Assembly (NCBI GenBank): GCA_010909165.1
Contig: VJWM01000068.1
Span: forward strand, 744,001 to 808,000
Direction of reading: 5' to 3'
DNA from: Anthoceros angustus
Taxonomy: Eukaryota; Plantae; Anthocerotophyta
DNA length: 64,000 bases
The notes beneath the pieces are model-generated. The model was not told the origin of the DNA. It saw nothing but the letters and a program-made list of their open reading frames with translations, and searched no databases. The translations under genes were made by a program, and so were the position numbers. Positions 1-45,233 of this stretch are shown in pieces (position 1 is the first letter of the stretch; each line of letters begins with the position of its first letter).

Positions 1-74
1 GAAGAATCATTCCGACTTCTTCTTTTGTTTGGTACCTTAGAGTGTAATCCAAACCCTTCAAACCCACGATGCAT

Positions 75-518
75 ATACTTGCATTTAAGGCTACAATAAG
101 TCTTCACGCTTTTGCATCCGCCCGATCCAATACCATAGTGACTTGTATTTCGTTGGTGCTTGCAAAATCTTGTAACTTGGGAGGCAGAGCATGTGGTCCT
201 TTTCATTGCATTTGAAGGAGTAATATCCTCGATGGAGATAGGCGATGAAAGACTACGAATCTCTGAAGTCCAAACACCATAGCGTCGATTAACTTTTGAA
301 TAGTCAAAACCTCATGCCCGCATGTGAATCATAGAACATTGAATGCAAAATGGTGCACCCAGCATTCAATACAAAATTTATTGCACCACACTTCTCCATG
401 TGAGGATGCAGCGTGCACTTCACATGATACTCATGCTCAAGAAAATGGGTAACCAATCAGCTGGCGTAAATAAACAGCTTGTGTTCCCGGTCTTGGGTGC
501 ATCTCTTCCAACAAATAG
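75..518 (-). CDS. PLATZ-domain zinc-finger protein, array copy 1 (apparent frameshifts)
   Basis: Cross-copy reconstruction: DWLPIFLEHEYHVKCTLHPHMEKSxCNKFCIECxGAPFCIQCSKDSHAGHEVLTIRKVNRRYGVWTSEIRSLSSPISIEDITPFKCNEKDHMLLPPKLQ...KTYCSLKCK. It fits the PLATZ signature C-x2-H-x11-C-x2-C-x5-C-x2-C-x4-H-x2-H and the terminal C-x3-C. Confidence reflects doubt about intactness more than about the domain. Confidence 0.7.
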
Positions 519-1247
519 CTACAAGTTGTAACAAATGAACATTAATAATTTCAAATATAATCACATAATTTAGTTTTAACATAATTCTCAAATCATTCAA
601 TGTTAAATCCATCTATATTAGAAACAAAATAGAAGTAAAATAATATAACACACCTTTTATCTTTGGGTCTAAAACTAACCTTAAAAAATAGAATTGACTT
701 GATGTACTTACTTCGATTGATAACACACCAAAAATCTCAAAATGGAATAAACAGATGGATCTCTTTCCACACATATATAGAGTTAAACATGCATAATGTA
801 TCGATAATAAACTTTTAAGCTCGAATAGTCTTTGTGAGAATTTCACTCTACATATAATTAAAGTGTAAAATGTAATATTTTATATATTTTATAATGAATT
901 AAATATGCAGAGATGGAAGTCTCGTCTACACTAGGGTGACGGGGAATAACCCTCTAGTGGGGAGCAACCCTCTAGAGGGAGGGCCCAGCCAAGGGAGTAG
1001 GCCCCTCAATGTCTACTCTCAAGCTACCCTACTAGAAATCCTTGTCCATGTTACACTTTTGTTAAGATTGGACCCTGGATGTTACACTTATTGCAATTTT
1101 GGGTCTATATAGCACTTATTCAGCCCCTTGTTACAAGAGGTTTGGAATATCGAGGATATTACTCCTTCAAATGCAATGAAGAGGACCACATGCTCTGTTT
1201 CCTAAGATACAAGATTTTACAAGCACCAACATAGTCGACCATGACAA
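143..1247. repeat. Inverted repeat present in every array unit; arms 143-233 and 1149-1247 in unit 1
   Basis: The reverse complement of 152-233 matches 1149-1230 with 6 mismatches in 82 nt. Equivalent + strand arms lie at 5347-5443, 9523-9620, 13680-13780, 18839-18938 and 23037-23136. Confidence 0.95.
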
Positions 1248-4200
1248 TTCCCACACCACAATGATTTGGACCCTGGATGTTACACTTATGTTGCAATTTT
1301 AGGTCCATATTACAATGAGGTTTAAGGTTTTTCCCTTTGCGGATCGGTCTTTGGGATGGAGTGCGTATCTTGAGTCACTTTAATTATAATTTTGAGCCTA
1401 CTTGAAACTTTGGAGCATGCTTGCGGGCATAGGGCATGTCCGTGTCACTCACGGGCTCAGCCTTATCCCTCACTTTTGGAGGAGGAGGAGGAGGAGTCTT
1501 TGTCCATCATGTTATTTACCCCCATTTTATTAGTGTTTGGTAAGACTAAGGGATAGAATGACTACATGGTGTGTGCGAATAAGTTAAATAAATTGAAATC
1601 AAAGAAAGTGCAGTTATGAGGATGGAGTGAGATGAGAGAGATAGACTCATGTTACGTCATGTTGCAATAATGGTGTGGGAAAAATTATTTAACCCATGTA
1701 TAGGTGACTTGGGTAACTTTATTCAATACAACAAGATAGGATTCTCTAGAACTAAATGATATGAAATTGCGAAAATTGGGTTGGAGACTATATTAAATAA
1801 GTAGAGATAGGGTGAGCCCATATACCATAAGACACCTAACCCCAGTGGCCGACTTACTCAAATCGAGACTTTGAGGTCGGTTTAGAAACTCGACAAAAAT
1901 ATGGGACCCCAATGAATTAAGCATGCCATAGAGTTAGATCCGCTTTACATTCCGCACCTCTAGATCTACAAAGCGAAAAGATTGGACCATAACAACATTT
2001 AGAATCTCGATATGAATGTAGGCGGTGGTGGCAAGCTCGGGGCTCTCGGCATTTCTCTTGCGATGATCGCTGGCATATGCTCCCCTCTCTATGGTAATTC
2101 TCCTTGCATTGTGAGAGAAAATGCTCTGGTCTGCGTCTTGGTGGAGTGGGAAGCGAATGGAGTCGCCGTGTGGGTGTGATGTCCTTGTTTTGTGGTATAT
2201 GGAGGCTTGGGCGGGGAGGCGTATAGTGCAACGTTTGCATTCACCGTCTCAATTTTATGAAGGATTTGCCGTTCATCATGCCTCAAATTTGTCGGTTGAG
2301 TGTCTCATGCGAAAATTTGGTGAGGATGATCGCTGACTATGATAGTCGGAATGGCATGTCGATGCCATGGAACTTTCTGACACTTGGCGAGACCGCACTC
2401 TCTTAAATATGTAGAAGCTTGCCTCCCATTGCAAGATGGTACATGGGCTATATGCAAAGGAATGAGCTATCTTGCAAAGGATATCGCCAAGGAGATGTAA
2501 GCAGTACACACACCATTGGAAAGCCCGTGTTCGTTGCATGAGGCGGTGCCATTTTCCATATTTCGTGTGCACGGTGAGAGCATGAAAAATGGAGTGAGGC
2601 AGGGAATTAAGCGGAAAAATAGGCCAGCGGACCCCGGTCATTCTGGGGTTAAAGTGTCCCTTAGGGTCACAACGAGAAAGAGCAACTAAGATTTATCCGA
2701 CGGTGACTTGGCCCTACATTCCAACCGAGGTTGTCCGTAGCTGAGGGTTGGCATTCGTGGGGGCTAGCCCACGGCTCTTGGCCCTTCTTGGGTTATCCCA
2801 CCTCGGTTCGGGGTTGATGGGTTTCCCATCTCTTCTTTTTAATAAAGTCTCCATTGAGCCATTTTAGTTATCCTCGATGGATTGGGATTGTGCGAAATGG
2901 TGCTGCTCTCGGCGGTTTTGCTCTGGCCGTCGCCACTATATAAGATAGTGGTTGCAAGTTTTCTTGCAGCTTTTGCCAAGGCCTATTGAATATGGCATGG
3001 TGTGAGCTCCTTTTCTACTTATGTGGTATTTTATAAGAGTTTTGGAGGAGTTATTTTTAATACAACAGCAAGTACAAAGGAGGCTTAGGACACTTCTTCA
3101 CACACGATAGGGAGGCCTTTTCATATTCTTAGCTTTGTATCTTTTATTTTTCAGCTTCGTGTTGGTTATTGGGCCATGCATAATCTGCGTCACATTGTAT
3201 CTTCTCATTATTTGAAGTCTTCTTGTATCTTTGTGGTAGGTTTCAATGAAGAAGCTTGTAGTGGTTGTTGGCGGTTTCATCTACGTAACTATGAAAAGTT
3301 AGTTTTCACTTGCAGTATTAAAATACTAATTGGTGTTGATGAAGAGTGGTGTTAAATCATACTTTTGGGTTAGTGTGTCTACTCGTTTGACAAGAAATCA
3401 AAACCCAATAAGTTAATGTTTCAAAGAAGGTCGGTCTGCGTATGAAGGAGGTGAGCAAGGTCATCATCCATTTGATGTCCTTTCTTCCCTCATCCTATAT
3501 GAAAGCTATTTCCTCTTCTCCATGTTCAAGTGCAAGGAATTGTACAATCTGCCCTTGAAGGTTGAGCTTAGGCATCCTCGTGGGGCAACGCGTACTCTTA
3601 TTTTGGTACAAAGGAGGACATCTATTTTAAGTCGTATATATGTGTTTTGATATAACAAAACTTACCACTAAAACAAGAAAGTAAGAGAAGTGAAGTAAAA
3701 TTTTACAACACACCATTTTACTATCGAGTCTAACACAAATATTTAAAAAAAAGCACACTTGAGCGAAACACTTTTGCTTTGAAAATTTATTAAGTTGCTA
3801 CTTCTACATGCCCGCTTAACAACTTAATATATGAATCTTTTAATGAGATCTACTAGTTATTATTGACATCATTTTCAATCGAACTAAAACCCTTGCGGCC
3901 ACGTTAGTGCTCATTTGATCTCGATCGTTGTGACCAAGCTTTAGCAAAGAAGACCTTCCACAACTTCTTTCTCTAGCTCGGATAGAAAGGTCTCATTCCG
4001 GGTCCAATTGGGCCACAAGCTTCCTCACTCTGTGTTTTGAACTTGTACTGCGAAATTGATTGATGCATTGTCAAATGCGCTTACATATTTTTATTGCATC
4101 TTATTAACGCGTCTACCAACACAATGCAAATACTAAGATGTTACACCATGCTAGTAGATATTGGGAGTGGCGATATATCATTGTGAGAAGAATCATTCGA

Positions 4201-4262
4201 CACATTCTTCTTTTGTTTGGTACCTTAGAGTGTAATCCAAACCCTTCAAACCCACGATGCAT

Positions 4263-4708
4263 ATACTTGCATTTAAGGCTACAATAAGTCTTCACGCTTT
4301 TGCATCCATAGATCCAATACCATAGTGACTTGTCATGGTACGCGTTGGTGCTTGCAAAATCTTGTAACTTGGGAGGCAGGGCATGTGGTCCTTTTCATTG
4401 CATTTGAAGGAGTAATATCCTCGATGGAGATAGGCGATGAAAGACTACGAATCTCTGAAGTCCAAACACCATAAGCGTCGATTAACTTTTGAATAGTCAA
4501 AACCTCATGCCCCGCATGTGAATCCTTAGAACATTGAATGCAAAATGGTGCACCCCGCATTCAATACAAAATTTATTGCACCGACTTCTCCATGTGAGGA
4601 TGCAACGTGCACTTCACATGATACTCATGCTCAAGAAAATGGGTAACCAATCGGTGGCGCCAAATAGGCTTTGTGTTCTGTCTTGGGTGCATCTCTTCCA
4701 ACAAATAG
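4263..4708 (-). CDS. PLATZ-domain protein, array copy 2 (apparent frameshifts)
   Basis: ORF-track pieces 4333..4560 (GAPFCIQCSKDSHAGHEVLTI...SEIRSLSSPISIEDITP), 4113..4295 (KTYCSLKCK) and 4614..4802 (DWLPIFL). Confidence 0.7.
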
Positions 4709-7700
4709 CTACAAGTTGTAACAAATGAACATTAATAATTTCAAATATAATCACATAATTTAGTTTTAACATAATTCTCAAATCATTCAATGTTAAATCC
4801 ATCTATATTAGAAACAAAAATAGAAGTAAAATAATATAACACACCTTTTATCTTTGGGTCTAAAACTAACCTTAAAAAATAGAATTGACTTGATGTACTT
4901 ACTTCGATTGATAACACACCAAAAATCTCAAAATGGAATAAACATGATGGATCTCTTTCCACATATATAGAGTTAAACATGCATAATGTTTCGATAATAA
5001 ACTTTTAAGCTCGAATAGTCTTTGTGAGAATTTCACTCTACATATAATTAAAGTGTAAAATGTAATATTTTATATATTTTATAATGAATTAAATATGCAG
5101 AGATGGAAGTCTCGTCTACACTAGGGTGACGGGAATAACCCTCTAGTGGGGAGCAACCCTCTAGAGGGAGAGGGCCAGGAGCCAAGGGGAGTAGGCCCCT
5201 CAATGTCTACTCTCAAGCTACCCTACTAGAAATCCTTGTCCATGTTACACTTTTGTTAAGATTTGGACCCCTGGATGTTACACTTGTATTGCAATTTTGG
5301 GTCTATATAGCACTTATTCAGCCCCTTGTTACAAGAGGTTTGGAATATCGAGGATATTACTCCTTCAAATGCAATGAAGAGGACCACATGCTCTGTTCCT
5401 AAGATACAAGATTTTACAAGCACCAACATAGTCACCATGACAATTCCCACACCACAATGATTTGGACCCCTGGATGTTACACTTATGTTGCAATTTTAGG
5501 TCCATATTACAATGAGGTTTAAGGTTTTTCCCTTTGCGGATCGGTCTTTGGGATGGGGGCGATATCTTGAGTCACTTTAATTATAATTTTGAGCCTACTT
5601 GAAGCCTTTGGAGCATGCTTGCGGGCATAGGGCATGTCCGTGTCACTCACGGCTCAGCCTTATCCCTCACTTTTGGAGGAGGAGGAGGAGGAGGAGTCTT
5701 TGTCCATCATGTTATTTACCTTACATTTTATTAGTGTTTGGTAAGACTAAGGGATAGAATGACTACATGGTGTGTGCGAATAAGTTAAATAAATTGAAAT
5801 CAAAGAAAGGGCAGTTATGAGGATGGAGTGAGATGAGAGAGATAGACTCGTGTTATTCGGTCATGTTGCAATAATGGTGTGGGAAAAATTATTTAACCCA
5901 TGTATAGGTGACTTGGAGTAACTTTATTCAATACAACAAGATAGGATTCTCTAGAACTAAATGATATGAAATTGCGAAAATTGGGTTGGAGACTATATTA
6001 AATAAGTAGAGATAGGGTGAGCCCATATACCATAAGACACCCTAACCCCAGTGGCCGACTTACTCAAATCGAGACTTTGAGGTCGGTTCCGAAACTCGAC
6101 AAAAATATGGGACCCCAATGAATTAAGCATGCCATAGAGTTAGATCCGCTTTACATTGCACCTCTAGATCTACAAAGCGGAAAAGATTGGACCATAACAA
6201 CATTTAGAATCTCGATATGAATGTGGAAGCGGTGGTGGCAAGCTCGGGCTCTCGCATTTCTCTTGCGCGATGATCGCTGGCATATGCTCCCCTCTCTCTA
6301 TGGTAATTCTCCTTGCATTGTGAGAGAGAAATGCTGGCGTCGTGGTGGAGTGGGAAGCGAATGGAGTGCGTAGTGTGGGTGGCCAGTGTCCTTGTTTTGT
6401 GGTATATGGAGGCTTGGGCGGGGAGGCGGTAGTGCAAACGTTTGCATTCACCGTCTCAATTTTATGAAGGATTTGCGTTCATCATGCCTCAAATTTGTCC
6501 AGTTGAGTGTCTCATGCGAAAATTTGGTGAGGATGATCGCGACTATGATATGGAATGGCATGTCGATGCCATGGAACTTTACTTTCGCTTGAGAGACCGC
6601 ACTCTCTTAAATATGTAGAAGCTTGCCTCCCATTGCAAGATGGTATGGGCTATATGCAAAGGGAAGGCTGTGGGCTATCTTAAAGGATATGCGCCAAGGA
6701 GATGTAAGCGACACACACCATTGGAAAGCCGTCGTTCGTTGCATGAGGCGGTGCCATTTTTCCATATTCGTGTGCACCGGTGAGAGCATGAAAAATGGAG
6801 TGAGGCAGGCGGAAAAATAGGCCAGCGGACCCCGGTCGTCGGGGTTAAAGTGTCCCTTAGGGTCACAACGAAAGAGCAACTAAGATTTATCCGGCCGGTG
6901 ACTTGGCCCTACATTCAAGCGAGGTTGTCCGTAGCTACGGGGTTGGCATTCGTGGGGCTAGCCCGGCTCTTGGCCCTTTCTTGGGTTATCCCACCTCGGT
7001 TGGGGTTGATGGGTTTCCATCTCTTCTTTTAATAAAGTCTCCATTGAGCCATTTTAGTTATCCTCGATGGATTGGGATTGTCGAAATGGTGCTGCTCTGT
7101 CGGCGGTTTCGGTACTGCGGCGTCGCCACTATATAAGATAGTGGTTGCAAGTTTTCTTGCAGCTTTTGCCAAGGCCTATTGAATATGGCATGGTGTGAGC
7201 TCCTTTTCTACTTATGTGGTATTTTATAAGAGTTTTGGAGGAGTTATTTTTAATACAACAGCAAGTACAAAGGAGGCTTGAGGACACTTCTTCACACACG
7301 ATAGGGAGGCCTTTTCATATTCTTAGCTTTGTATCTTTTATTTTTCACCGTGTTGGTTATTGGGCCATGCATAATCTGCGTCACATTGTATCTTCTCATT
7401 ATTTGAAGTCTTCTTGTATCTTTGTGGTAGGTTTCAATGAAGAAGCTTGTAGTGGTTATTGGCGGTTTCATCTACGTAACTATGAAAAGTTAGTTTTCAC
7501 TTGCAGTATTAAAATACTAATTGGTGTTGATGAAGAGTGGTGTTAAATCATACTTTTGGGTTAGTGTGTCTACTCGTTTTGACAAGAAATCAAAACCCAA
7601 TAAGTTAATGTTTCAAAGAAGGTCGTCTGCGTATGAAGGAGGTGAGCAAGGTCATCATCCATTTGATGTCCTTTCTTCCCTCATCCTATATGAAAGCTAT

Positions 7701-8444
7701 TTCCTCTTCTCCATGTTCAAGTGCAAGGGTGCAATGCCTTGAAGGTTGAGCTTAGGCATCCTCGTAGGGCAACGTACTCTTATTTTCGGTACAAAGGAGG
7801 ACATCTATTTTTAAGTCGTATATATGTGTTTTGATATAACAAAACTTACCACTAAAACAAGAAAGTAAGAGAAGTGAAGTAAAATTTTACAACACACCAT
7901 TTTACTATCACTAACACAAATATTTAAAAAAAAGCACACTTGACGCGAAACACTTTTGCTTTGAAAATTTATTAAGTTGCTACTTCTACATGCCCCGCTT
8001 AACAACTTAATATATGAATCTTTTAGCTGAGATCTACTAGTTATTATTGACATCATTTTCAATCGAACTAAAACCCTTGCGCCACGTTAGTGCTCATTTG
8101 ATCTCGATCGTTGTGACCAAGCTTTAGCAAAAGAAGACCTTCCACAACTTCTTTCTCTAGCTCGGATAGAAAGGTCTCATTCCGGGTCCAATTGGGCCAC
8201 AAGCTTCCCTCATGTTTTGAACTTGTACTGCGAAAATTGATTGATGCATTGTCAAATGCGCTTACATATTTTTATTGCATCTTATTAACGCTCTACCAAC
8301 ACAATGCAAATACTAAGATGTTACCCGCCATGCTAGTAGATATTGGGAGTGGCGATATATCATTGTGAGAAGAATCATTCCGACTGTTCTTCTTTTGTTT
8401 GGTACCTTAGAGTGTAATCCAAACCCTTCAAACCCACGATGCAT

Positions 8445-8893
8445 ATACTTGCATTTAAGGCTACAATAAGTCTTCACGCTTTTGCATCCGCCCGATCCAA
8501 TACCATAGTGACTTGTCATGGTACGCTACGTTGGTGCTTGCAAAATCTTGTAACTTGGGAGGCAGAGCATGTGGTCCTTTTCATTGCATTTGAAGGGAGT
8601 AATATCCTCGATGGAGATAGGCGATGAAAGACTACGAATCTCTCAAGTCCAAACACCATAGCGTCGATTAACTTTTCGAATAGTCAAAACCTCATGCCCC
8701 GCATGTGAATCCTTAGAACATTGAATGCAAAATGGTGCACCTGCATTCAATACAAAATTTATTGCACCGACTTCTCCATGTGAGGATGCAACGTGCACTT
8801 CACATGATACTCATGCTCAAGAAAAATGGGTAACCAATCGGGCGCCAAATAGGCTTTGTGTTCAGTCTTGGGTGCATCTCTTCCAACAAATAG
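8445..8893 (-). CDS. PLATZ-domain protein, array copy 3 (apparent frameshifts)
   Basis: This copy reads APDWLPIFLEHEYHVKCTLHPHMEKS and IEDITPFKCNEKDHML in frame. ORF 8313..8519 has KTYCSLKCK. Putative intron 8894-9084 has a GTAAGT donor and a TTGTAG acceptor. Confidence 0.7.
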
Positions 8894-11800
8894 CTACAAG
8901 TTGTAACAAATGAACATTAATAATTTCAAATATAATCACATAATTTAGTTTTAACATAATTCTCAAATCATTCAATGTTAAATCCATCTATATTAGAAAC
9001 AAAAATAGAAGTAAAATAATATAACACACCTTTTATCTTTGGGTCTAAAACTAACCTTAAAAATAGAATTGACGATGTACTTACTTGCGATTGATAACAC
9101 ACCAAAAATCTCAAAATGGAATAAACATGATGGATCTCTTTCCACACATATATAGAGTTAAACATGCATAATGTTTCGATAATAAACTTTTAACTCGAAT
9201 AGTCTTTGTGAGAATTTCACTCTACATATAATTAAAGTGTAAAATGTAATATTTTATATATTTTATAATGAATTAAATATGCAGAGATGGAAGTCTCGTC
9301 TACACTAGGGTGACGGGAATAACCCTCTAGTGGGGAGCAACCCTCTAGAGGGAGGGCCAAGGGGAGTAGGCCCCCTCAATGTCTACTCTCAAGCTACCCT
9401 ACTAGAAATCCTTGTCCATGTTACACTTTTGTTAAGATTTGGACCCCTGGATGTTACACTTGTATTGCAATTTTGGGTCTATATAGCACTTATTCAGCCC
9501 CTTGTTACAAGAGGTTTGGAATATCGAGGATATTACTCCTTCAAATGCAATGAAGAGGACCACATGCTCCTGTTCCTAAGATACAAGATTTTACAAGCAC
9601 CAACATAGTCACCATGACAATTCCCACACACAATGATTTGGACCCCTGGATGTTACACTTATGTTGCAATTTTAGGTCCATATTACAATGAGGTTTAAGG
9701 TTTTTCCCTTTGCGGATCGGTCTTTGGGATGGGGTGCGTATCTTGAGTCACTTTAATTATAATTTTGAGCCTACTTGAAGCCTTTGGAGCATGCTTGCGG
9801 GCATAGGGCATGTCCGTGTCACTCACGGGCTCAGCCTTATCCCTCACTTTTGGAGGAGGAGGAGGAGGAGGAGTCTTTGTCCATCATGTTATTTACCCCA
9901 CATTTTATTAGTGTTTGGTAAGACTAAGGGATAGAATGACTACATGGTGTGTGCGAATAAGTTAAATAAATTGAAATCAAAGAAAGGGTACAGTTATGAG
10001 GATGGAGTGAGATGAGAGAGATAGACTCAGTGTTACGTCATGTTGCAATAATGGTGTGGGAAAAATTATTTAACCCATGTATAGGTGACTTGGAGTAACT
10101 TTATTCAATACAACAAGATAGGATTCTCTAGAACTAAATGATATGAAATTACGAAAATTGGTTTGGAGACTATATTAAATAAGTAGAGATAGGGTGAGCC
10201 CATATACCATAAGACACCCTAACCCCAGTGGCCGACTTACTCAAATCGAGACTTTGAGGTCGGTTTAGCTCGACAAAATATGGGACCCCAATGAATTAAG
10301 CATGCCATAGAGTTAGATCCGCTCATTGCACCTCTAGATCTACAAAGCGAAAAGATTGGACCATAACAACATTTAGAATCTCGATATGAATGTGGAAGCG
10401 GTGGCAAGCTCGGGGCTCTCGGCATTTCTCTTGCGCGATGATCGCTGGCATATGCTCCCCTCTCTCTATGGTAATTCTCCTTGCATTGACAGAGAAATGC
10501 GTACAGTCGTGGTGGAGTGGGAAGCGAAATGTCGCAGGTGTGGGTGATGTCCTTGTTTTGTGGTATATGGAGGCTTGGGCGGGGAGGCGGTATGGTGCAG
10601 AAACGTTTGCATTCACCGTCTCAATTTTATGAAGGATTTGCCGTTCATCATGCCTCAAATTTGTCCGAGTTGAGTGTCTCATGCGAAATTTGGTGAGGAT
10701 GATCGCCTGATATTTGGAATGGCATGTCGATGCCATGGAACTTTCAACACTCCGGCGCACTCTCTTAAATATGTAGAAGCTTGCCTCCCATTGCAAGATG
10801 GTATGGGCTATATGCAAAGGGAAGGCTGAGCTATCTTAGGATATGCGCCAAGGAGATGTAAGCGACACACACCATTGGAAAGCCGTCGTTCGTTGCATGA
10901 GGCGGTGCCATTTTTCCATATTTCTGTGCACCGGTGAGAGCATGAAAAATGGAGTGAGGCCCGGAATTAGCGGAAAAATAGGCCAGCGGACCCCGGTCAT
11001 TACAGGGTTAAAGTGTCCCTTAGGGTCACGAGAAAAAACAACTAAGATTTATCCGGGTGACGGCCCTACATTCAAGAGGTTGTCCGTAGCTACGGTTGGC
11101 ATTCGTGGGGGCTAGCCCCGGCTCTTGGCCCTTCTTGGGTTATCCCACCTCGGTTCGGGGTTGATGGGTTTCCATCTCTTCTTTTAATAAAGTCTCCATT
11201 GAGCCATTTTAGTTATCCTCGATGGATTGGGATTGTGCGAAATGGTGCTGCTCTGTCGAGCGGTTTTTTGGCCGCTGCGCCACTATATAAGATAGTGGTT
11301 GCAAGTTTTCTTGCAGCTTTTGCCAAGGCCTATTGAATATGGCATGGTGTGAGCTCCTTTTCTACTTATGTGGTATTTTATAAGAGTTTTGGAGGAGTTA
11401 TTTTTAATACAACAGCAAGTACAAAGGAGGCCGAGGACACTTCTTCACACACGATAGGGAGGCCTTTTCATATTCTTAGCTTTGTATCTTTTATTTTTCA
11501 GCTTCTGTTGGTTATTGGGCCATGCATAATCTGCGTCACATTGTATCTTCTCATTATTTGAAGTCTTCTTGTATCTTTGTGGTAGGTTTCAATGAAGAAG
11601 CTTGTAGTGGTTGTTGGCGGTTTCATCTACGTAACTATGAAAAGTTAGTTTTCACTTGCAGTATTAAAATACTAATTGGTGTTGATGAAGAGTGGTGTTA
11701 AATCATACTTTTGGGTTAGTGTGTCTACTCGTTTTGACAAGAAATCAAAACCCAATAAGTTAATGTTTCAAAGAAGGTCGTGTCAGATGAAGGAGGTGAG

Positions 11801-12599
11801 CAAGGTCATCATCCATTTGATGTCCTTTCTTCCCTCATCCTATATGAAAGCTATTTCCTCTTCTCCATGTTCAAGTGCAAGGCTGCAATCGCCCTTGAAG
11901 GTTGAGCTTAGGCATCCTCGTAGGGCAACGTACTCTTATTTTGGTACAAAGGAGGACATCTATTTTTAAGTCGTATATATGTGTTTTGATATAACAAAAC
12001 TTACCACTAAAAACAAGAAAGTAAGAGAAGTGAAGTAAAATTTTACAACACACCATTTTACTATCGATCTAACACAAATATTTAAAAAAAAAAAGCACAC
12101 TTGAGCGAAACACTTTTGCTTTGAAAATTTATTAAGTTGCTACTTCTACATGCCCGCTTAACAACTTAATATATGAATCTTTTAGAGATCTACTAGTTAT
12201 TATTGACATCATTTTCAATCGAACTAAAACCCTTGCGTACGTTAGTGCTCATTTGATCTCGATCGTTGTGACCAAGCTTTAGCAAAGAAGACCTTCCACA
12301 ACTTCTTTCTCTAGCTCGGATAGAAAGGTCTCATTCCGGGTCCAATTGGGCCACAAGCTTCCTCACTCATGTTTTGAACTTGTACTGCGAAAATTGATTG
12401 ATGCATTGTCAAATGCGCTTACATATTTTTATTGCATCTTATTAACGTCTACCAACACAATGCAAATACTAAGATGTTACCGCCATGCTAGTAGATATTG
12501 GGAGTGGCGATATATCATTGTGAGAAGAATCATTCCGACTGTTCTTCTTTTGTTTGGTACCTTAGAGTGTAATCCAAACCCTTCAAACCCACGATGCAT

Positions 12600-13045
12600 A
12601 TACTTGCATTTAAGGCTACAATAAGTCTTCACGCTTTTGCATCCCTTGATCCAATACCATAGTGACTTGTCATGGTACACGTTGGTGCTTGCAAAATCTT
12701 GTAACTTGGGAGGCAGGGCATGTGGTCCTTTTCATTGCATTTGAAGGAGTAATATCCTCGATGGAGATGGCGATGAAAGACTACGAATCTCAAGTCCAAA
12801 CACCATAGCGTCGATTAACTTTTCGAATAGTCAAAACCTCATGCCCGCATGTGAATCCTTAGAACATTGAATGCAAAATGGTGCACCCTGCATTCAATAC
12901 AAAATTTATTGCACCCGACTTCTCCATGTGAGGATGCAGCGTGCACTTCACATGATACTCATGCTCAAGAAAATGGGTAACCAATCGTTTGGCGCCAAAT
13001 AAACCTTTGTGTTCCTGTCTTGGGTGCATCTCTTCCAACAAATAG
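12600..13045 (-). CDS. PLATZ-domain protein, array copy 4 (apparent frameshifts)
   Basis: ORF 12859..13041 has FLEHEYHVKCTLHPHMEKS; ORF 12477..12680 has KTYCSLKCK. Confidence 0.7.
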
Positions 13046-15451
13046 CTACAAGTTGTAACAAATGAACATTAATAATTTCAAATATAATCACATAATTTAG
13101 TTTTAACATAATTCTCAAATCATTCAATGTTAAATCCATCTATATTAGAAACAAAAATAGAAGTAAAATAATATAACACACCTTTTATCTTTGGGTCTAA
13201 AACTAACCTTAAAAATAGAATTGACTTGATGTACTTAACGATTGATAACACACCAAAAATCTCAAAATGGAATAAACACGATGGATCTCTTTCCACACAT
13301 ATATAGAGTTAAACATGCATAATGTATCGATAATAAACTTTTAAGCTCGAATAGTCTTTGTGAGAATTTCACTCTACATATAATTAAAGTGTAAAATGTA
13401 ATATTTTTATATATTTTATAATGAATTAAATATGCGAGATGGAAGTCTCGTCTACACTAGGGTGACGGGAATAACCCTCTAGTGGGAGCAACCCTCTAGA
13501 GGAGAGGGCCAGGCCAAGGGGAGTAGGCCCCCTCAATGTCTACTCTCAAGCTACCCTACTAGAAATCCTTGTCCATGTTACACTTTTTGTTAAGATTTGG
13601 ACCCTGGATGTTACACTTGTATTGCAATTTTGGGTCTATATAGCACTTATTCAGCCCCTTGTTACAAGAGGTTTGGAATATCGAGGATATTACTCCCTTC
13701 AAATGCAATGAAGAGGACCACATGCTCCTGTTTCCTAAGATACAAGATTTTACAAGCACCAACATAGTCGACCATGACAATTCCCACACCACAATGATTT
13801 GGACCCTGGATGTTACACTTATGTTGCAATTTTAGGTCCATATTACAATGAGGTTTAAGGTTTTTCCCTTTGCGGATCGGTCTTTGGGATGGGGTGCGTA
13901 TCTTGAGTCACTTTAATTATAATTTTGAGCCTACTTGAAGCCTTTGGAGCATGCTTGCGGGCATAGGGCATGTCCGTGTCACTCACGGCTCAGCCTTATC
14001 CCTCACTTTTGGAGGAGGAGGAGGAGGAGTCTTTGTCCATCATGTTATTTACCCTTACATTTTATTAGTGTTTGGTAAGACTAAGGGATAGAATGACTAC
14101 ATGGTGTGTGCGAATAAGTTAAATAAATTGAAATCAAAGAAAGGGTACAGTTATGAGGATGGAGTGAGATGAGAGATAGACTCGTGTTGGTCATGTTGCA
14201 ATAATGGTGTGGGAAAAATTATTTAACCCATGTATAGGTGACTTGGAGTAACTTTATTCAATACAACAAGATAGGATTCTCTAGAACTAAATGATATGAA
14301 ATTGCGAAATTGGGTTGGAGACTATATTAAATAAGTAGAGATAGGGTGAGCCCATATACCATAAGACACCCTAACCCCGGAATGGCCGACTTACTCAAAT
14401 CGAGACTTTGAGGTCGGTTTCGAGCTCGACAAAAATATGGGACCCCAATGAATTAAGCATGCCATAGAGTTAGATCCGCTTTCTCACCTCTAGATCTACA
14501 AAGCGAAAAGATTGGACCATAACAACATTTAGAATCTCGATATGAATGTGGAAGCGGTGGTGGCAAGCTCGGGGCTCTCGGCATTTCTCTTGCGCGCGAT
14601 GATCGCTGGCATATGCTCCCCTCTCTATGGTAATTCTCCTTGCATTGACAAAGAGAAATGCAGATGCAGCGTCTTGGTGGAGTGGGAAGCGAATGGAGTC
14701 GCCGTGTGGGTGTGATGTCCTTGTTTTGTGGTATATGGAGGCTTGGACAGGGAGGCGATGGTAAAACGTTTGCATTCACCGTCTCAATTTTATGAAGGAT
14801 TTGCCGTTCATCATGCCTCAAATTTGTCCAGTTGAGTGTCTCATGCGAAATTTGGTGAGGATGATCGCGACTATGATATGGAATGGCATGTCGATGCCAT
14901 GGAACTTTCTGACACTAAGCGACCGCACTCTCTTAAATATGTAGAAGCTTGCCTCCCATTGCAAGATGGTGTGGGCTATATGCAAAGGGAAGGCTGGGCT
15001 ATCTTGTAAAGGATATGCGCCAAGGAGATGTAAGCAGTACACACACCATTGGAAAGCCCGTCGTTCGTTGCATGAGGCGGTGCCATTTTTCCATATTTCG
15101 TGTGCACCGGTGAGAGCATGAAAAATGGAGTGAGGCCCGGAATTAGCGGAAAAATAGGCCAGCGGACCCCGGTCATTCGGGGTTAAAGTGTCCCTTAGGG
15201 TCACAACGAGAAAGAGCAACTAAGATTTATCCGGGTGACTTGGCCCTACATTCAAGCGAGGTTGTCCGTAGCTACGGGGTTGGCATTCGTGGGGGCTAGC
15301 CCCGGCTCTTGGCCCTTCTTGGGTTATCCCACCTCGGTTCGGGGTTGATGGGTTTCCATCTCTTCTTTTAATAAAGTCTCCATTGAGCCATTTTAGTTAT
15401 CCTCGATGGATTGGGATTGTGCGAAATGGTGCTGCTCCGCCGGCGGTTTAA

Positions 15452-17396
15452 GGCCGTCGCCACTATATAAGATAGTGGTTGCAAGTTTTCTTGCAGCTTT
15501 TGCCAAGGCCTATTGAATATGGCATGGTGTGAGCTCCTTTTCTACTTATGTGGTATTTTATAAGAGTTTTGGAGGAGTTATTTTTAATACAACAGCAAGT
15601 ACAAAGGAGGCTTCTGAGGACACTTCTTCACACACGATAGGGAGGCCTTTTCATATTCTTAGCTTTGTATCTTTTATTTTTCAGCTTCGTGTTGGTTATT
15701 GGGCCATGCATAATCTGCGTCACATTGTATTTTCTCATTATTTGAAGTCTTCTTGTATCTTTGTGGTAGGTTTCAATGAAGAAGCTTGTAGTGGTTATTG
15801 GCGGTTTCATCTACGTAACTATGAAAAGTTAGTTTTCACTTGCAGTATTAAAATACTAATTGGTGTTGATGAAGAGTGGTGTTAAATCATACTTTTGGGT
15901 TAGTGTGTCTACTCGTTTTGACAAGAAATCAAAACCCAATAAGTTAATGTTTCAAAGAAGGTCGGTCTGCGTATGAAGGAGGTGAGCAAGGTCATCATCC
16001 ATTTGATGTCCTTTCTTCCCTCATCCTATGAAAGCTATTTCCTCTTCTCCATGTTCAAGTGCAAGGAATTGTACAATCGCCCTTGAAGGTTGAGCTTAGG
16101 CATCCTCGTGAGACAGCGTACTCTTATTTTCGGTACAAAGGAGGACATCTATTTTTAAGTCGTATATATGTGTTTTGATATAACAAAACTTACCACTAAA
16201 AACAAGAAAGTAAGAGAAGTGAAGTAAAATTTTACAACACACCATTTTACTATCGTCTAACACAAATATTTAAAAAAAAAGCACACTTGAGCGAAACACT
16301 TTTGCTTTGAAAATTTATTAAGTTGCTACTTCTACATGCACCTTAACAACTTAATATATGAATCTTTTAATGAGATCTACTAGTTATTATTGACATCATT
16401 TTTCAATCGAACTAAAACCCTTGCGGCCGTCGCCACTATATAAGATAGTGGTTGCAAGTTTTCTTGCAGCTTTTGCCAAGGCCTATTGAATATGGCATGG
16501 TGTGAGCTCCTTTTCTACTTATGTGGTATTTTATAAGAGTTTTGGAGGAGTTATTTTTAATACAACAGCAAGTACAAAGGAGGCTCGAGGACACTTCTTC
16601 ACACGATAGGGAGGCCTTTTCATATTCTTAGCTTTGTATCTTTTATTTTTCAGCTTCGTGTTGGTTATTGGGCCATGCATAATCTGCGTCACATTGTATC
16701 TTCTCATTATTTGAAGTCTTCTTGTATCTTTGTGGTAGGTTTCAATGAAGAAGCTTGTAGTGGTTATTGGCGGTTTCATCTACGTAACTATGAAAAGTTA
16801 GTTTTCACTTGCAGTATTAAAATACTAATTGGTGTTGATGAAGAGTGGTGTTAAATCATACTTTTGGGTTAGTGTGTCTACTCGTTTTGACAAGAAATCA
16901 AAACCCAATAAGTTAATGTTTCAAAGAAGGTCGGTCTGCGTATGAAGGAGGTGAGCAAGGTCATCATCCATTTGATGTCCTTTCTTCCCTCATCCTATAT
17001 GAAAGCTATTTCCTCTTCTCCATGTTCAAGTGCAAGGAATTGTACAATCTGCCCTTGAAGGTTGAGCTTAGGCATCCTCGTAGGGCAACGACTCTTATTT
17101 TGGTACAAAGGAGGACATCTATTTTTAAGTCGTATATATGTGTTTTGATATAACAAAACTTACCACTAAAAACAAGAAAGTAAGAAGTGAAGTAAAATTT
17201 TACAACACACCATTTTACTATCGTCTAACACAAATATTTAAAAAAAAAGCACACTTGAGCGAAACACTTTTGCTTTGAAAATTTATTAAGTTGCTACTTC
17301 TACATGCACCTTAACAACTTAATATATGAATCTTTTAATGAGATCTACTAGTTATTATTGACATCATTTTTCAATCGAACTAAAACCCTTGCGGCC
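15452..17396 (+). repeat. ~970-bp internal tandem duplication within one array unit
   Basis: At 16425 the sequence jumps from 'aaacccttgcggcc' (normally followed by acgttag) back to 'ggcc|gtcgccactatataag'. GGCC occurs at 15452, 16425 and 17393, which explains the 5177-bp period. Confidence 0.95.
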
Positions 17397-17760
17397 ACGT
17401 TAGTGCTCATTTGATCTCGATCGTTGTGACCAAGCTTTAGCAAAGAAGACCTTCCACAACTTCTTTCTCTAGCTCGGATAGAAAGGTCTCATTCCGGGTC
17501 CAATTGGGCCACAAGCTTCCTCACTCTGTGTTTTGAACTTGTACTGCGAAAATTGATTGATGCATTGTCAAATGCGCTTACATATTTTTATTGCATCTTA
17601 TTAACGCGTCTACCAACACAATGCAAATACTAAGATGTTACCGCCATGCTAGTAGATATTGGGAGTGGCGATATATCATTGTGAGAAGAATCATTCCGAC
17701 TGTTCTTCTTTTGTTTGGTACCTTAGAGTGTAATCCAAACCCTTCAAACCCACGATGCAT

Positions 17761-18202
17761 ATACTTGCATTTAAGGCTACAATAAGTCTTCACGCTTTTG
17801 CATCCGCCCGATCCAATACCATAGTGACTTGTCATGGTCATACGTTGGTGCTTGCAAAATCTTGTAACTTGGGAGGCAGGAGCATGTGGTCCTTTTCATT
17901 GCATTTGAAGGAGTAATATCCTCGATGGAGATAGGCGATGAAAGACTACGAATCTCAAGTCCAAACACCATAAGCGTCGATTAACTTTTCGAATAGTCAA
18001 AACCTCATGCCCGCATGTGAATCTTAGAACATTGAATGCAAAATGGTGCACCGCATTCAATACAAAATTTATTGCACGACTTCTCCATGTGAGGATGCAA
18101 CGTGCACTTCACATGATACTCATGCTCAAGAAAATGGGTAACCAATCGTGGCCAAATAGGCTTTGTGTTCACAGTCTTGGGTGCATCTCTTCCAACAAAT
18201 AG
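17761..18202 (-). CDS. PLATZ-domain protein, array copy 5 (apparent frameshifts)
   Basis: ORF 17777..17971 has EIRSLSSPISIEDITP; ORF 17638..17841 has KTYCSLKCK. DNA is collinear with the other copies. Confidence 0.7.
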
Positions 18203-21200
18203 CTACAAGTTGTAACAAATGAACATTAATAATTTCAAATATAATCACATAATTTAGTTTTAACATAATTCTCAAATCATTCAATGTTAAATCCATCTAT
18301 ATTAGAAACAAAAATAGAAGTAAAATAATATAACACACCTTTTATCTTTGGGTCTAAAACTAACCTTAAAAATAGAATTGACTTGATGTACTTACTTGCG
18401 ATTGATAACACACCAAAAATCTCAAAATGGAATAAACATGATGGATCTCTTTCCACATATATAGAGTTAAACATGCATAATGTTTCGATAATAAACTTTT
18501 AAGCTCGAATAGTCTTTGTGAGAATTTCACTCTACATATAATTAAAGTGTAAAATGTAATATTTTTATATATTTTATAATGAATTAAATATGCAGAGATG
18601 GAAGTCTAAATCTACACTAGGGTGAGGAATAACCCTCTAGTGGGAGCAACCCTCTAGAGGGAGAGGGCCTGAGCCAAGGGGAGTAGGCCCCCTCAATGTC
18701 TACTCTCAAGCTACCCTACTAGAAATCCTTGTCCATGTTACACTTTTGTTAAGATTTGGACCCTGGATGTTACACTTGTATTGCAATTTTGGGTCTATAT
18801 AGCACTTATTCAGCCCCTTGTTACAAGAGGTTTGGAATATCGAGGATATTACTCCCTTCAAATGCAATGAAGAGGACCACATGCTCTGCTTCCTAAGATA
18901 CAAGATTTTACAAGCACCAACATAGTCGACCATGACAATTCCCACACCACAATGATTTGGACCCTGGATGTTACACTTATGTTGCAATTTTAGGTCCATA
19001 TTACAATGAGGTTTAAGGTTTTCCCTTTGCCGGATCGGTCTTTGGGATGGGGTGCGTATCTTGAGTCACTTTAATTATAATTTTGAGCCTACTTGAAGCC
19101 TTTGGAGCATGCTTGCGGGCATAGGGCATGTCCGTGTCACTCACGGGCTCAGCCTTATCCCTCACTTTTGGAGGAGGAGGAGGAGGAGGAGTCTTTGTCC
19201 ATCATGTTATTTACCCTTACATTTTATTAGTGTTTGGTAAGACTAAGGGATAGAATGACTACATGGTGTGTGCGAATAAGTTAAATAAATTGAAATCAAA
19301 GAAAGTGCAGTTATGAGGATGGAGTGAGATGAGAGAGATAGACTCAGTGTTACGGTCATGTTGCAATAATGGTGTGGGAAAAATTATTTAACCCATGTAT
19401 AGGTGACTTGGAGTAACTTTATTCAATACAACAAGATAGGATTCTCTAGAACTAAATGATATGAAATTGCGAAAATTGGTTTGGAGACTATATTAAATAA
19501 GTAGAGATAGGGTGAGCCCATATACCATAAGACACCCTAACCCCAGTGGCCGACTTACTCAAATCGAGACTTTGAGGTCGGTTTCGAGCTCGACAAAAAT
19601 ATGGGACCCCAATGAATTAAGCATGCCATAGAGTTAGATCCGCTTTACATTCCGCACCTCTAGATCTACAAAGCGAGAAAAGATTGGACCATAACAACAT
19701 TTAGAATCTCGATATGAATGTGGAAGCGGTGGTGGCAAGCTCGGGGCTCTCGGCATTTCTCTTCTTGTGATGATCGCTGGCATATGCTCCCCTCTCTATG
19801 GTAATTCTCCTTGCATTGACAAGAGAAATGCAGATGCAGTGTGCGTGGTGGAGTGGGAAGCGAATGGAGTGCGTGTGGGTGATGTCCTTGTTTTGTGGTA
19901 TATGGAGGCTTGGACGGGGAGGCGTTATGGTGCAAACGTTTGCATTCACCGTCTCAATTTTATGAAGGATTTGCCGTTCATCATGCCTCAAATTTGTCCA
20001 GTTGAGTGTCTCATGCGAAATTTGGTGAGGATGATCGCGACTATGATAGTCGGAATGGCATGTCGATGCCATGGAACTTTGCGACACTCGCTTGGCGAGA
20101 CCGCACTCTCTTAAATATGTAGAAGCTTGCCTCCCATTGCAAGATGGCTGGGCTATATGCAAAGGGAAGGCTGGGCTATCTTGTAAAGGATATCGCCAAG
20201 GAGATGTAAGCAGTACACACACCATTGGAAAGCCCGTCGTTCGTTGCATGAGGCGGTGCCATTTTTCCATATTTCGTGTGCACCGGTGAGAGCATGAAAA
20301 ATGGAGTGAGGCGGAATTAGCGGAAAAATAGGCCAGCAGACCCGGTCATTCAGGGTTAAAGTGTCCCTTAGGGTCACAACGAGAAAGAGCAACTAAGATT
20401 TATCCGGGGTGACTTGGCCCTACATTCCAAGCGAGGTTGTCCGTAGCTACGGGGTTGGCATTCGTGGGGCTAGCCCACGGCTCTTGGCCCTTCTTGGGTT
20501 ATCCCACCTCGGTTCGGGGTTGATGGGTTTCCCATCTCTTCTTTTTAATAAAGTCTCCATTGAGCCATTTTAGTTATCCTCGATGGATTGGGATTGTGCG
20601 AAATGGTGCTGCTCTGTCGGCGGTTTTTCTGGCCGTCGCCACTATATAAGATAGTGGTTGCAAGTTTTCTTGCAGCTTTTGCCAAGGCCTATTGAATATG
20701 GCATGGTGTGAGCTCCTTTTCTACTTATGTGGTATTTTATAAGAGTTTTGGAGGAGTTATTTTTAATACAACAGCAAGTACAAAGGAGGCTTCGAGGACA
20801 CTTCTTCACACACGATAGGGAGGCCTTTTCATATTCTTAGCTTTGTATCTTTTATTTTCAGCTTCGTGTTGGTTATTGGGCCATGCATAATCTGCGTCAC
20901 ATTGTATCTTCTCATTATTTGAAGTCTTCTTGTATCTTTGTGGTAGGTTTCAATGAAGAAGCTTGTAGTGGTTGTTGGCGGTTTCATCTACGTAACTATG
21001 AAAAGTTAGTTTTCACTTGCAGTATTAAAATACTAATTGGTGTTGATGAAGAGTGGTGTTAAATCATACTTTTGGGTTAGTGTGTCTACTCGTTTTGACA
21101 AGAAATCAAAACCCAATAAGTTAATGTTTCAAAGAAGGTCGTCTGCGTATGAAGGAGGTGAGCAAGGTCATCATCCATTTGATGTCCTTTCTTCCCTCAT

Positions 21201-21960
21201 CCTATATAAAGCTATTTCCTCTTCTCCATGTTCAAGTGCAAGGAACTGATCGCCTTGAAGGTTGAGCTTAGGCATCCTCGTAGGGCAACGTACTCTTATT
21301 TTGGTACAAGGAGGACATCTATTTTTAAGTCGTATATATGTGTTTTGATATAACAAAACTTACCACTAAAAACAAGAAAGTAAGAGAAGTGAAGTAAAAT
21401 TTTACAACACACCATTTTACTATCGATCTAACACAAATATTTAAAAAAAAAAAGCACACTTGAGCGAAACACTTTTGCTTTGAAAATTTATTAAGTTGCT
21501 ACTTCTACATGCACCTTAACAACAATATATGAATCTTTTTAATGAGATCTACTAGTTATTATTGACATCATTTTCAATCGAACTAAAACCCTTGCGGCCA
21601 CGTTAGTGCTCATTTGATCTCGATCGTTGTGACCAAGCTTTAGCAAAGAAGACCTTCCACAACTTCTTTCTCTAGCTCGGATAGAAAGGTCTCATTCCGG
21701 GTCCAATTGGGCCACAAGCTTCCTCACTCTGTGTTTTGAACTTGTACTGCGAAAATTGATTGATGCATTGTCAAATGCGCTTACATATTTTTATTGCATC
21801 TTATTAACGTCTACCAACACAATGCAAATACTAAGATGTTACGCCATGCTAGTAGATATTGGGAGTGGCGATATATCATTGTGAGAAGAATCATTCCGAC
21901 TGTTCTTCTTTTGTTTGGTACCTTAGAGTGTAATCCAAACCCTTCAAACCCACGATGCAT

Positions 21961-22401
21961 ATACTTGCATTTAAGGCTACAATAAGTCTTCACGCTTTTG
22001 CATCCGCCCGATCCAATACCATAGTGACTTGTCATGGTGCTCGTTGGTGCTTGCAAAATCTTGTAACTTGGGAGGCAGGAGCATGTGGTCCTTTTCATTG
22101 CATTTGAAGGAGTAATATCCTCGATGGAGATAGGCGATGAAAGACTACGAATCAAGTCCAAACACCATAGCGTCGATTAACTTTTCGAATAGTCAAAACC
22201 TCATGCCCGCATGTGAATCTTAGAACATTGAATGCAAAATGGTGCACCCTGCATTCAATACAAAATTTATTGCACCGACTTCTCCATGTGAGGATGCAGC
22301 GTGCACTTCACATGATACTCATGCTCAAGAAAATGGGTAACCAATCGGTGGCAAATAGGCTTTGTGTTCACAGTCTTGGGTGCATCTCTTCCAACAAATA
22401 G
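21961..22401 (-). CDS. PLATZ-domain protein, array copy 6 (apparent frameshifts)
   Basis: ORF 21811..22161 has IRSLSSPISIEDITP...KTYCSLKCK. DNA is collinear with the other copies. Confidence 0.7.
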
Positions 22402-24810
22402 CTACAAGTTGTAACAAATGAACATTAATAATTTCAAATATAATCACATAATTTAGTTTTAACATAATTCTCAAATCATTCAATGTTAAATCCATCTATA
22501 TTAGAAACAAAATAGAAGTAAAATAATATAACACACCTTTTATCTTTGGGTCTAAAACTAACCTTAAAAATAGAATTGACTTGATGTACTTACTTGCGAT
22601 TGATAACACACCAAAAATCTCAAAATGGAATAAACATGATGGATCTCTTTCCACACATATATAGAGTTAAACATGCATAATGTTTCGATAATAAACTTTT
22701 AAGCTCGAATAGTCTTTGTGAGAATTTCACTCTACATATAATTAAAGTGTAAAATGTAATATTTTATATATTTTATAATGAATTAAATATGCAGAGATGG
22801 AAGTCTAAATCTACACTAGGGTGACGGGAATAACCCTCTAGTGGGAGCAACCCTCTAGAGGGAGAGGGCCAGCCAAGGGGAGTAGGCCCCTCAATGTCTA
22901 CTCTCAAGCTACCCTACTAGAAATCCTTGTCCATGTTACACTTTTGTTAAGATTTGGACCCTGGATGTTACACTTGTATTGCAATTTTGGGTCTATATAG
23001 CACTTATTCAGCCCCTTGTTACAAGAGGTTTGGAATATCGAGGATATTACTCCCTTCAAATGCAATGAAGAGGACCACATGCTCCTGTTCCTAAGATACA
23101 AGATTTTACAAGCACCAACATAGTCGACCATGACAATTCCCACCACAATGATTTGGACCCGGATGTTACACTTATGTTGCAATTTTAGGTCCATATTACA
23201 ATGAGGTTTAAGGTTTTTCCCTTTGCGGATCGGTCTTTGGGATGGGGTGCGTATCTTGAGTCACTTTAATTATAATTTTGAGCCTACTTGAAGCAACCTT
23301 TGGAGCATGCTTGCGGGCATAGGGCATGTCCGTGTCACTCACGGGCTCAGCCTTATCCTCACTTTTGGAGGAGGAGGAGGAGGAGGAGTCTTTGTCCATC
23401 ATGTTATTTACCCTTACATTTTATTAGTGTTTGGTAAGACTAAGGGATAGAATGACTACATGGTGTGTGCGAATAAGTTAAATAAATTGAAATCAAAGAA
23501 AGTGCAGTTATGAGGATGGAGTGAGATGAGAGATAGACTCTGTTACGTCATGTTGCAATAATGGTGTGGGAAAAATTATTTAACCCATGTATAGGTGACT
23601 TGGAGTAACTTTATTCAATACAACAAGATAGGATTCTCTAGAACTAAATGATATGAAATTGCGAAAATTGGGTTGGAGACTATATTAAATAAGTAGAGAT
23701 AGGGTGAGCCCATATACCATAAGACACCCTAACCCCAGAATGGCCGACTTACTCAAATCGAGACTTTGAGGTCGGTTTCCGAGCTCTGACAAAAATATGG
23801 GACCCCAATGAATTAAGCATGCCATAGAGTTAGATCCGCTTTCTGTTCCGCACCTCTAGATCTACAAAGCAGAAAAGATTGGACCATAACAACATTTAGA
23901 ATCTCGATATGAATGTGGAAGCAGCTGGTGGCAAGCTCAGGGCTCTCAGCATTTCTCTTGCGCGCGATGATCGCCTGGCATATGCTCCCCTCTCTCTATG
24001 GTAATTCTCCTTGCATTGACAAAGAGAAAGTACGGGTACGGCGTGCCGTGGTGGAGTGGGAAGCAGAATGGAGTGCGCCGTGTGGGTGACAGTGTCCTTG
24101 TTTTGTGGTATATGGAGGCTTGGACAGGGAGGCAGTATGGTACGAAACGTTTGCATTCACCGTCTCAATTTTATGAAGGATTTGCCGTTCATCATGCCTC
24201 AAATTTGTCCAGGTTGAGTGTCTCATGCCGAAAATTGGTGAGGATGATCGCCTGACTATGATAGCTGGAATGGCATGTCGATGCCATGGAACTTTGCAGC
24301 ACTCGCTTCGGCAGAGACCGCACTCTCTTAAATATGTAGAAGCTTGCCTCCCATTGCAAGATGGCTGTGGGCTATATGCAAGGAAGGCTGTGGGCTATGC
24401 GCAAAGGATATGCGCCAAGGAGATGTAAGCAGTACACACACCATTGGAAAGCCCGTCGTTCGTTGCATGAGGCAGGTGCCATTTTTCCATATTTCGTGTG
24501 CACCAGGTGAGAGCATGAAAAATGGAGTGAGGCCAGGAATTAGCGGAAAAATAGGCCAGCAGACCCCGGTCATTCTGGGGTTAAAGTGTCCCTTAGGGTC
24601 ACAACGAGAAAGAGCAACTAAGATTTATCCGGCCGGTGACTTGACGGCCCTACATTCCAACTGAGGTTGTCCGTAGCTACGGGGTTGGCATTCGTGGGGC
24701 TAGCCCCCTGGCTCTTGGCCCTTTACTGGGTTATCCCACCTCGGTTCGGGGTTGATGGGTTTCCCATCTCTTCTTTTTAATAAAGTCTCCATTGAGCCAT
24801 TTTAGTTATC

Positions 24811-25490: not shown

Positions 25491-25498
25491 CCTTGCCA

Positions 25499-45007: not shown

Positions 45008-45233
45008 GAGTTGTTGGGTACCATTCCTACAGTTTGTCATGATAATACTAGTTCAACTCTTGTATCGAATACATTCGAGTTATTGGGTACCATTCTTGCA
45101 ATTTTTCATGATAATACCAGTTCAACTCTTGTATCACATGATAGGCGAATACATTAGAGTTGTTGTTCACCATTCCTGTTGTTTGTCTGATAATACTAGT
45201 TCAACTCTTGTATCACACGATAATACTAGTTCA
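45008..45233. repeat. Degenerate ~70-80-bp tandem repeat with core GATAATACTAGTTCAACTCTTGTATC
   Basis: The core starts at 45041, 45110 and 45189, with a partial copy at 45219. Confidence 0.85.

Follow-up and report, generated by a model that had tools for sequence, protein, structure and literature searches.

Macrosatellites of the D4Z4/DUX4 type, described in primates, consist of kilobase-scale units arranged head to tail, each unit carrying one intronless open reading frame (ORF) for a DNA-binding factor (PMC5983732). PLATZ proteins have a first zinc site of the form C-x2-H-x11-C-x2-C-x(4-5)-C-x2-C-x(3-7)-H-x2-H and a second of the form C-x2-C-x(10-11)-C-x3-C (PMC11768212). We analysed a 64,000-nucleotide stretch of the genome of the hornwort Anthoceros angustus (contig VJWM01000068.1, positions 744,001 to 808,000; this whole stretch is the window, and positions below refer to it). 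The window opens with a tandem array, at positions 1-24810, that appears closest to D4Z4/DUX4 in organisation and, judged from its letters, closest to PLATZ in the gene it repeats. We put at roughly 0.6 the probability that this array is a young, silenced tandem gene cluster, that is, a gene-bearing macrosatellite, of about six copies in which the breaks in the gene are mostly noise. A first-pass annotation of the window knew of no described PLATZ macrosatellite, and our literature search likewise found no paper on PLATZ genes in such arrays.

The array comprises five full and two partial units of 4.2 kb, arranged head to tail (Table 1). Six families of anchor direct repeats recur at a spacing of 4152-4208 bp from the start of the window to approximately 24.8 kb. 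Units that were cut at the anchors and then aligned are 97.5-98.3% identical over aligned bases, with approximately 3% of gap columns. The right end of the array falls in the middle of a unit (unit-5 coordinate 20578), and the left end lies beyond the window. No terminal repeat or long terminal repeat (LTR)-like end was found where the array stops at 24810, and the remaining 39 kb of the window contain no further unit-like sequence. Anchor spacing, alignment and end position agree with the first-pass description of a 4.2-kb tandem array with six copies and a right end at 24810. With six 4.2-kb units that are head to tail, near-identical and rarely distinguished by plain substitutions, the locus has the organisation of a macrosatellite. 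The array has a GC content of 40.5%, compared with 49% in the flank. The observed/expected CpG ratio was dropped as a clue because it is uninformative (array 0.66, flank 0.65).

Every unit carries, on the minus strand, one copy of a gene of approximately 550 bp. The frames of the six copies are colinear and the coding part has no intron. A candidate ATG occurs in each copy in the invariant context GAAGAGATGCACCC, and each copy ends in ...YLLAWR followed by a stop, with an AATAAA approximately 50 nt downstream, giving a predicted protein of approximately 180 residues. As assembled, none of the six copies is open throughout. Stop-free pieces from different copies overlap one another (DWLPIFLEHEYHVKCTLHPHMEKS, CNKFCIEC, GAPFCIQCSKDSHAGHEVLTIRKVNRRYGVWT, SEIRSLSSPISIEDITPFKCNEKDHM... 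and ...GCKSVKTYCSLKCKYMHRG...LLAWR), and EIRSLSSPISIEDITPFKCNEKDHM and YCSLKCKY are also present among the frames; with the exception of the SEIRSLSSPISIEDITPFKCNEKDHM and GCKSVKTYCSLKCKYMHRG pieces, these are the minus-strand frames that had been quoted before, all of which we recovered. The DNA upstream of the gene is strongly AT-rich and contains a TATA-like box. In copy 4, a GTAAGT at 18385-18398 and a TTGTAG at approximately 18204 could be the borders of a putative intron in the 5' untranslated region. Each unit additionally contains an inverted partial copy of the gene, approximately 102 bp long and corresponding to its middle part, which lies approximately 900 bp upstream of the gene, beyond the TATA-like box; the inverted copy at 18839-18941 is 88-90% identical to 17826-17926. 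The two arms, gene and inverted copy, would be found together only in a read-through transcript from the preceding unit.

The differences between units are strongly clustered. The 441 variable columns among the five full units fall into 131 clusters, between which the sequence is invariant. Insertions or deletions occur in 121 of these clusters and three to five alleles among five units in 60, and only 5 clusters amount to a plain biallelic substitution. Among the 16 dinucleotides, CG shows the strongest enrichment at these hot spots: 63% of CG, 64% of CAG/CTG, 68% of CCG and 10 of 10 G4 runs are located there, compared with 22% of positions overall and 12-14% of AT/TA. The inverted paralogue shows like length heterogeneity at homologous positions (ACT-CC/ACTCCC and CATGCT(C)CTG), and within a unit the state of the paralogue is uncorrelated with that of the gene. 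Heterogeneity that recurs without such correlation argues for context-dependent error and not for descent. Nanopore consensus errors are known to cluster at 5-methylcytosine motifs and, next, at homopolymers (PMC6591954).

Only two runs, both from one sample, contain DNA of the window. One of them, X1, probably supplied the long reads from which the assembly was built; the other, X2, is classed as RNA by an automated guess and behaves accordingly, genes being covered and the array not. Beyond the array the assembly is of good quality: X2 contigs on the flanking PPR gene show 0 mismatches and 0 gaps, and the 924-codon PPR ORF is intact. Polishing would have missed the array consensus, since a short read has no unique place in a set of near-identical units. 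In silenced plant repeats the methylated contexts are CG and CHG. These error contexts suggest that the inter-unit differences are long-read noise on near-identical copies that are probably methylated at CG and CHG, and the approximately 19 breaks per gene copy would then be mostly base-calling noise at methylated cytosines and homopolymers. With the noise hot spots left out, the units truly diverge by far less than 1%, which bears out the earlier claim of recent amplification (or recent homogenisation). We found 14 fixed substitutions that only the last unit carries. The placement of X1 indels at hot spots (7 of 9) was dropped as evidence of noise, since a contig from another unit would produce the same outcome.

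The reading frame of the gene has to be followed across 19 hot spots, at 17 of which the alleles differ in length. An X1 contig of 270 nt (depth 50.9) lies on copy 5 at 21843-22110 with no mismatch and with two inserted letters at one hot spot. With these two letters, one open frame of 89 codons runs from FKCNEKDHMLLPPKLQDFASTNV through HYGIGSGGCKSVKTYCSLKCKY to ...YLLAW. The inverted paralogue reads FKCNEEDHMLLFPKIQDFTSTNIV in the same frame, and its changes are conservative. The middle of the composite protein proposed in the first-pass annotation (...LPSYKILQAPT) is therefore to be replaced: the X1 contig and the paralogue favour ...FKCNEKDHMLLPPKLQDFASTNV... running in-frame into ...HYGIGSGGCKSVKTYCSLKCKY. 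After ...QAPT, copy 2, the X1 contig and all six inverted paralogues have a TAG, which falls outside the frame that the X1 contig and the paralogue support. The units thus contain colinear frames that are all broken as assembled, together with one read-derived contig that is open for 89 codons. The true gene may be intact, a property that cannot be read from the assembly itself.

X2 has a depth of 0 over 21700-24457 and covers the sequence from 24579 onward, including the PPR gene, although contigs are better proof of presence than of absence. One X2 contig (24579-24931) crosses the array boundary, reaching from unique DNA into the last unit by 230 bp. The suggestion that the array is a dosage-amplified gene finds no support in this zero depth beside a covered neighbour. 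The word depth of X1 is approximately 30-110 in the array and 16-22 in the unique stretch 25246-25639, and depths of 19-37 are seen for X1 contigs that match only the end of the last unit, which is slightly diverged. These depths are not copy numbers, and they fit approximately six copies as assembled, perhaps with one or two more leftward, and not hundreds. The array had been estimated at 25 kb or more; that size is right, and depth suggests that the array is not much bigger.

By joining pieces of two copies, all eight ligands of the first PLATZ site can be seen in the PLATZ order C-H-C-C-C-C-H-H: copy 4 reads C-x2-H-x10-C-x2-C-x4-C-x2-C and copy 2 reads C-x2-C-x4-H-x2-H. The reported match to this site holds for the order of the ligands and is uncertain for the x11 spacing, which copy 4, the sole uninterrupted reading, gives as x10 (18023-18133). 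An x11 spacing would take one more residue at a CG/G-run hot spot, where the alleles vary in length and represent every frame class. Of the second site, only x10-C-x3-C is present, in CSLKCK. Its CxxC is absent in every possible frame, as had been observed, whereas the YGIG said to replace it depends on the true frame, the position reading Y-x2-G or, in an alternative frame, W-x2-I. The gene has no RRKGxPxRAP-like tail, again as previously noted.

Compared with pea PLATZ1 and its relatives, transcription factors characterised by zinc-dependent binding to A/T-rich DNA, the array gene shares the first-site ligand order (C-x2-H ... C-x2-C-x4-C-x2-C-x4-H-x2-H), a W-L-x2-[FL]-L-x3-[FY] lead-in 13 residues ahead of the first Cys, a distance of approximately 60 residues from H-x2-H to the second site, x10-C-x3-C-K in a CSLxCK context, a size of approximately 180 residues and a plant host. 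The lead-in (W-L-x2-F-L-x3-Y-H-x2-C-x2-H in this gene), the 60-residue distance and the x10-C-x3-C-K motif (CSLKCK) all fit what we take to be features of the PLATZ family. The array gene differs in the x10 first spacer of its sole uninterrupted reading, in having no second-site CxxC, in its unrecognisable central and C-terminal parts and in its intronless coding part. It also differs in forming a near-identical six-copy array, in contrast to the two PLATZ genes reported for Marchantia polymorpha (PMC11768212).

Database searches did not add statistical weight to this resemblance. A Pfam search with 14 stop-free pieces of the gene, each taken singly, at E<=10 returned no match to PF04640, the PLATZ family, and only sub-threshold matches to B-box, UBR and zinc-ribbon families. 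The best B-box (PF00643) scores were 16.5, 16.2 and 11.7 bits (E 0.01-0.3), below the gathering score of 24.1 bits, and a sequence search of the PDB listed the B-boxes of TRIM28 and TRIM54 at E of approximately 1. Word-seeded searches with a C-terminal piece of 121 residues and an N-terminal piece of 65 residues found nothing. A profile search of 1.84 billion representatives, using a two-piece alignment whose profile has just 49 positions, found no relative; the sole match (P0001) was rejected as a translated satellite aligned to a frame-shifted stretch. In a language-model look-alike search, the N-terminal piece was placed closest to a Streptophyta PLATZ/B-box cluster (score 0.84), which we treat as a lead only, and the C-terminal 106 residues gave no recognised family; the C-terminal half matches nothing. 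The AlphaFold model of the N-terminal piece was unusable (pLDDT 49). B-box zinc fingers (PF00643; TRIM B-box2) probably share the fold class of the gene product, but its W-L lead-in and CSLKCK tail are foreign to the B-box and all the B-box matches are below the curated cut-off. The earlier assignment to PLATZ thus retains its motif architecture and lacks its profile match. Because statistical support is absent despite this architecture, we call the gene PLATZ-like and very divergent, a label that seems reasonable but unproven and that stops short of established PF04640 membership.

These observations would be accounted for if a 4.2-kb segment bearing a lineage-specific, very divergent PLATZ-like gene had been multiplied head to tail to approximately six copies, with unequal exchange and gene conversion producing the copies and keeping them near-identical. 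The simplest origin is that a segment was duplicated and that unequal exchange and conversion then acted on the copies, and the truncated unit at the array edge and the 973-bp internal duplication in unit 4 may be traces of these processes; the latter shows that unequal exchange works within units too. The array is probably CG/CHG-methylated and transcriptionally silent in the sampled tissue. Several points weigh against this reading. The majority consensus of the six copies still shifts frame approximately 7 times, such that real shared frameshifts are possible, and a rule of taking the longest allele restores no frame either (for example at AAGT[...]GTGC). X1 is error-prone, showing gaps in the PPR gene at sites that X2 contigs cross without any, and if it is the data behind the assembly it is neither a truth set nor independent. 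Methylation is deduced from error context alone, the RNA evidence is one assembled data set whose zero depth is compatible with low or stage-limited expression, and no significant profile or sequence match backs PLATZ homology.

The shifts in the majority consensus could also arise if the array is an amplified pseudogene, in which the PLATZ-like gene died before or early in its multiplication and some of the breaks are real and common to all units. That no copy is open, that an out-of-frame allele is present in 5 of 6 copies at two sites (T4 at CCCA-TTTT and C2 at ACT-CC) and that the TAG after ...QAPT recurs so widely would all follow, as would the lost second-site CxxC, the lack of RNA and the unrecognised C-terminal half. 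However, lesions inherited from a dead founder would be common to the copies, whereas the breaks vary between copies, with several alleles at CG, CHG and homopolymer sites, and the TAG does not lie in the frame that X1 and the paralogue support. Eight first-site ligands and long stop-free stretches have, moreover, survived in an array with 0.052 stops per codon. We therefore think a pseudogene array the less likely reading. That the assembler blew up one or two copies into six noisy ones we find scarcely credible. The differences between copies are indeed mostly noise, and in parts of the last unit the word depth of X1 is just 1-2 times that of the unique flank; across most of the array it is 2-7 times the flank, the last unit has its 14 fixed substitutions and unit 4 its private duplication, and the junction with unique DNA is clean and spanned by contigs of both runs.

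The first-pass annotation had also raised the possibility that the gene is cargo of a selfish element, the unit being, or being derived from, a non-autonomous transposon or a rolling-circle or extrachromosomal circular DNA amplicon that moves PLATZ-like genes. The array is AT-richer than its flank, as such an origin might lead one to expect. The spacer, however, has no transposase, integrase, reverse transcriptase, Rep or helicase signal: Pfam searches of 10 spacer ORFs gave no credible match and no transposable-element or viral domain. The array ends in mid-unit without a terminal repeat or LTR-like end, and there is no copy or fragment of the unit in the other 39 kb of the window. IMG/VR contains no relative; the lone match (L001), considered as a viral relative, was rejected as a chance occurrence of the word CNKFCIEC in a phage protein. 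Mobile cargo is accordingly a very improbable account of this locus.

Other features of the window are listed in Table 1. A GC-richer spacer block, at which the CG hot spots are densest, contains long ORFs that overlap on both strands and have no match to a Pfam family; the block is probably non-coding. Rfam and tRNA scans of the window were blank. The genes that adjoin the array are ordinary and expressed, among them a PPR-E gene. At the array boundary is a decayed PPR fragment (24777-25240, minus strand), consisting of short ORFs with the PPR-like motifs VVTWSALIAG and PNSANFLCVVQ. Inside the PPR gene, Tandem Repeats Finder reports a 312-bp period at 26338-27493 (3.7 copies, 78% identical); this period is the PPR protein's own repeat structure, and hundreds of contigs from PPR paralogues stack there in both runs. 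Farther along, adjacent ORFs encoding an SNF2-related domain, a RING finger and Helicase_C look as if they together form an SNF2-RING helicase gene of the RAD5/RAD16 type, interrupted by introns; two ORFs upstream of it (49908-50858 and 51491-52093) match no Pfam family. Intergenic blocks of short tandem repeats, with periods of 30-106 bp, are located at 45066-46202 and 52845-54393.

Table 1. Features of the array and its flank, in window coordinates.
Feature	Position	Strand	Remarks
Partial first unit	1-466		
Five full units	start at 467, 4657, 8842, 12994, 18151		starts are the anchors at which units were cut
Truncated last unit	22350-24810		start is the last anchor (22350)
Gene copy 0	1-502	-	candidate ATG 502; final ~15 codons lost at window start
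Gene copy 1	4140-4692	-	candidate ATG 4692; broken into frames as assembled
Gene copy 2	8322-8877	-	candidate ATG 8877; in-frame pieces DWLPIFLEHEY..., GAPFCIQCSKDSHAGH...GVWT and EIRSL...FKCNEKDHM
Gene copy 3	12477-13029	-	candidate ATG 13029; PLATZ-like gene
Gene copy 4	17638-18186	-	candidate ATG 18186; sole uninterrupted reading of the first six zinc ligands, 18023-18133; AATAAA 17581-17594
Gene copy 5	21838-22385	-	candidate ATG 22385; read-derived contig on 21843-22110 with 89 open codons, FKCNEKDHM to C-terminus
TATA-like AT-rich box	18560-18578	-	~375 nt upstream of candidate ATG (copy 4)
Inverted partial gene copies	1149-1250, 5347-5446, 9523-9623, 13680-13783, 18839-18941, 23037-23139	+	one per unit
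Exact-tandem 973-bp spacer duplication	15458-16430 and 16431-17396		extra, private to unit 4; copies 98.3% identical
GC-richer spacer block	19600-20600 and homologous part of each unit		49% GC, 46 CG per kb
PPR-E gene	25499-28273		in array flank
Armadillo-repeat ORF			in array flank
SNF2-RING-helicase gene	47027-49393, perhaps to 52093	-	adjacent ORFs: SNF2-related domain, RING finger, Helicase_C
Second PPR-E gene	61263-63614		

The likeness to D4Z4/DUX4 comprises the kilobase-scale head-to-tail units with one intronless candidate ORF each for what would be a DNA-binding factor, the AATAAA-type signal after the ORF in every unit, the absence of RNA in the sampled tissue and the probable methylation of the array. 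The hornwort array differs in gene family, in kingdom and in having just approximately six units. The likeness is one of organisation.

A young tandem gene cluster is, taken alone, an ordinary kind of object. The break pattern is of wider use. Genes that look broken within arrays of this assembly should not be labelled pseudogenes, and a pattern of breaks that follows CG, CHG and homopolymer contexts may mark methylated repeats. It is a long shot, but the genome may contain a class of methylated macrosatellites, each multiplying an intact, intronless, fast-evolving gene for a DNA-binding protein or transcription factor whose expression would be confined to a brief stage or tissue such as the gametangia, the zygote or the sporophyte. 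If so, this class would parallel, in plants, DUX4/D4Z4 or the ampliconic genes of sex chromosomes. Given open frames and stage-specific RNA, such a set of arrays would add to the known examples of plant regulatory genes embedded in repeats a new one.

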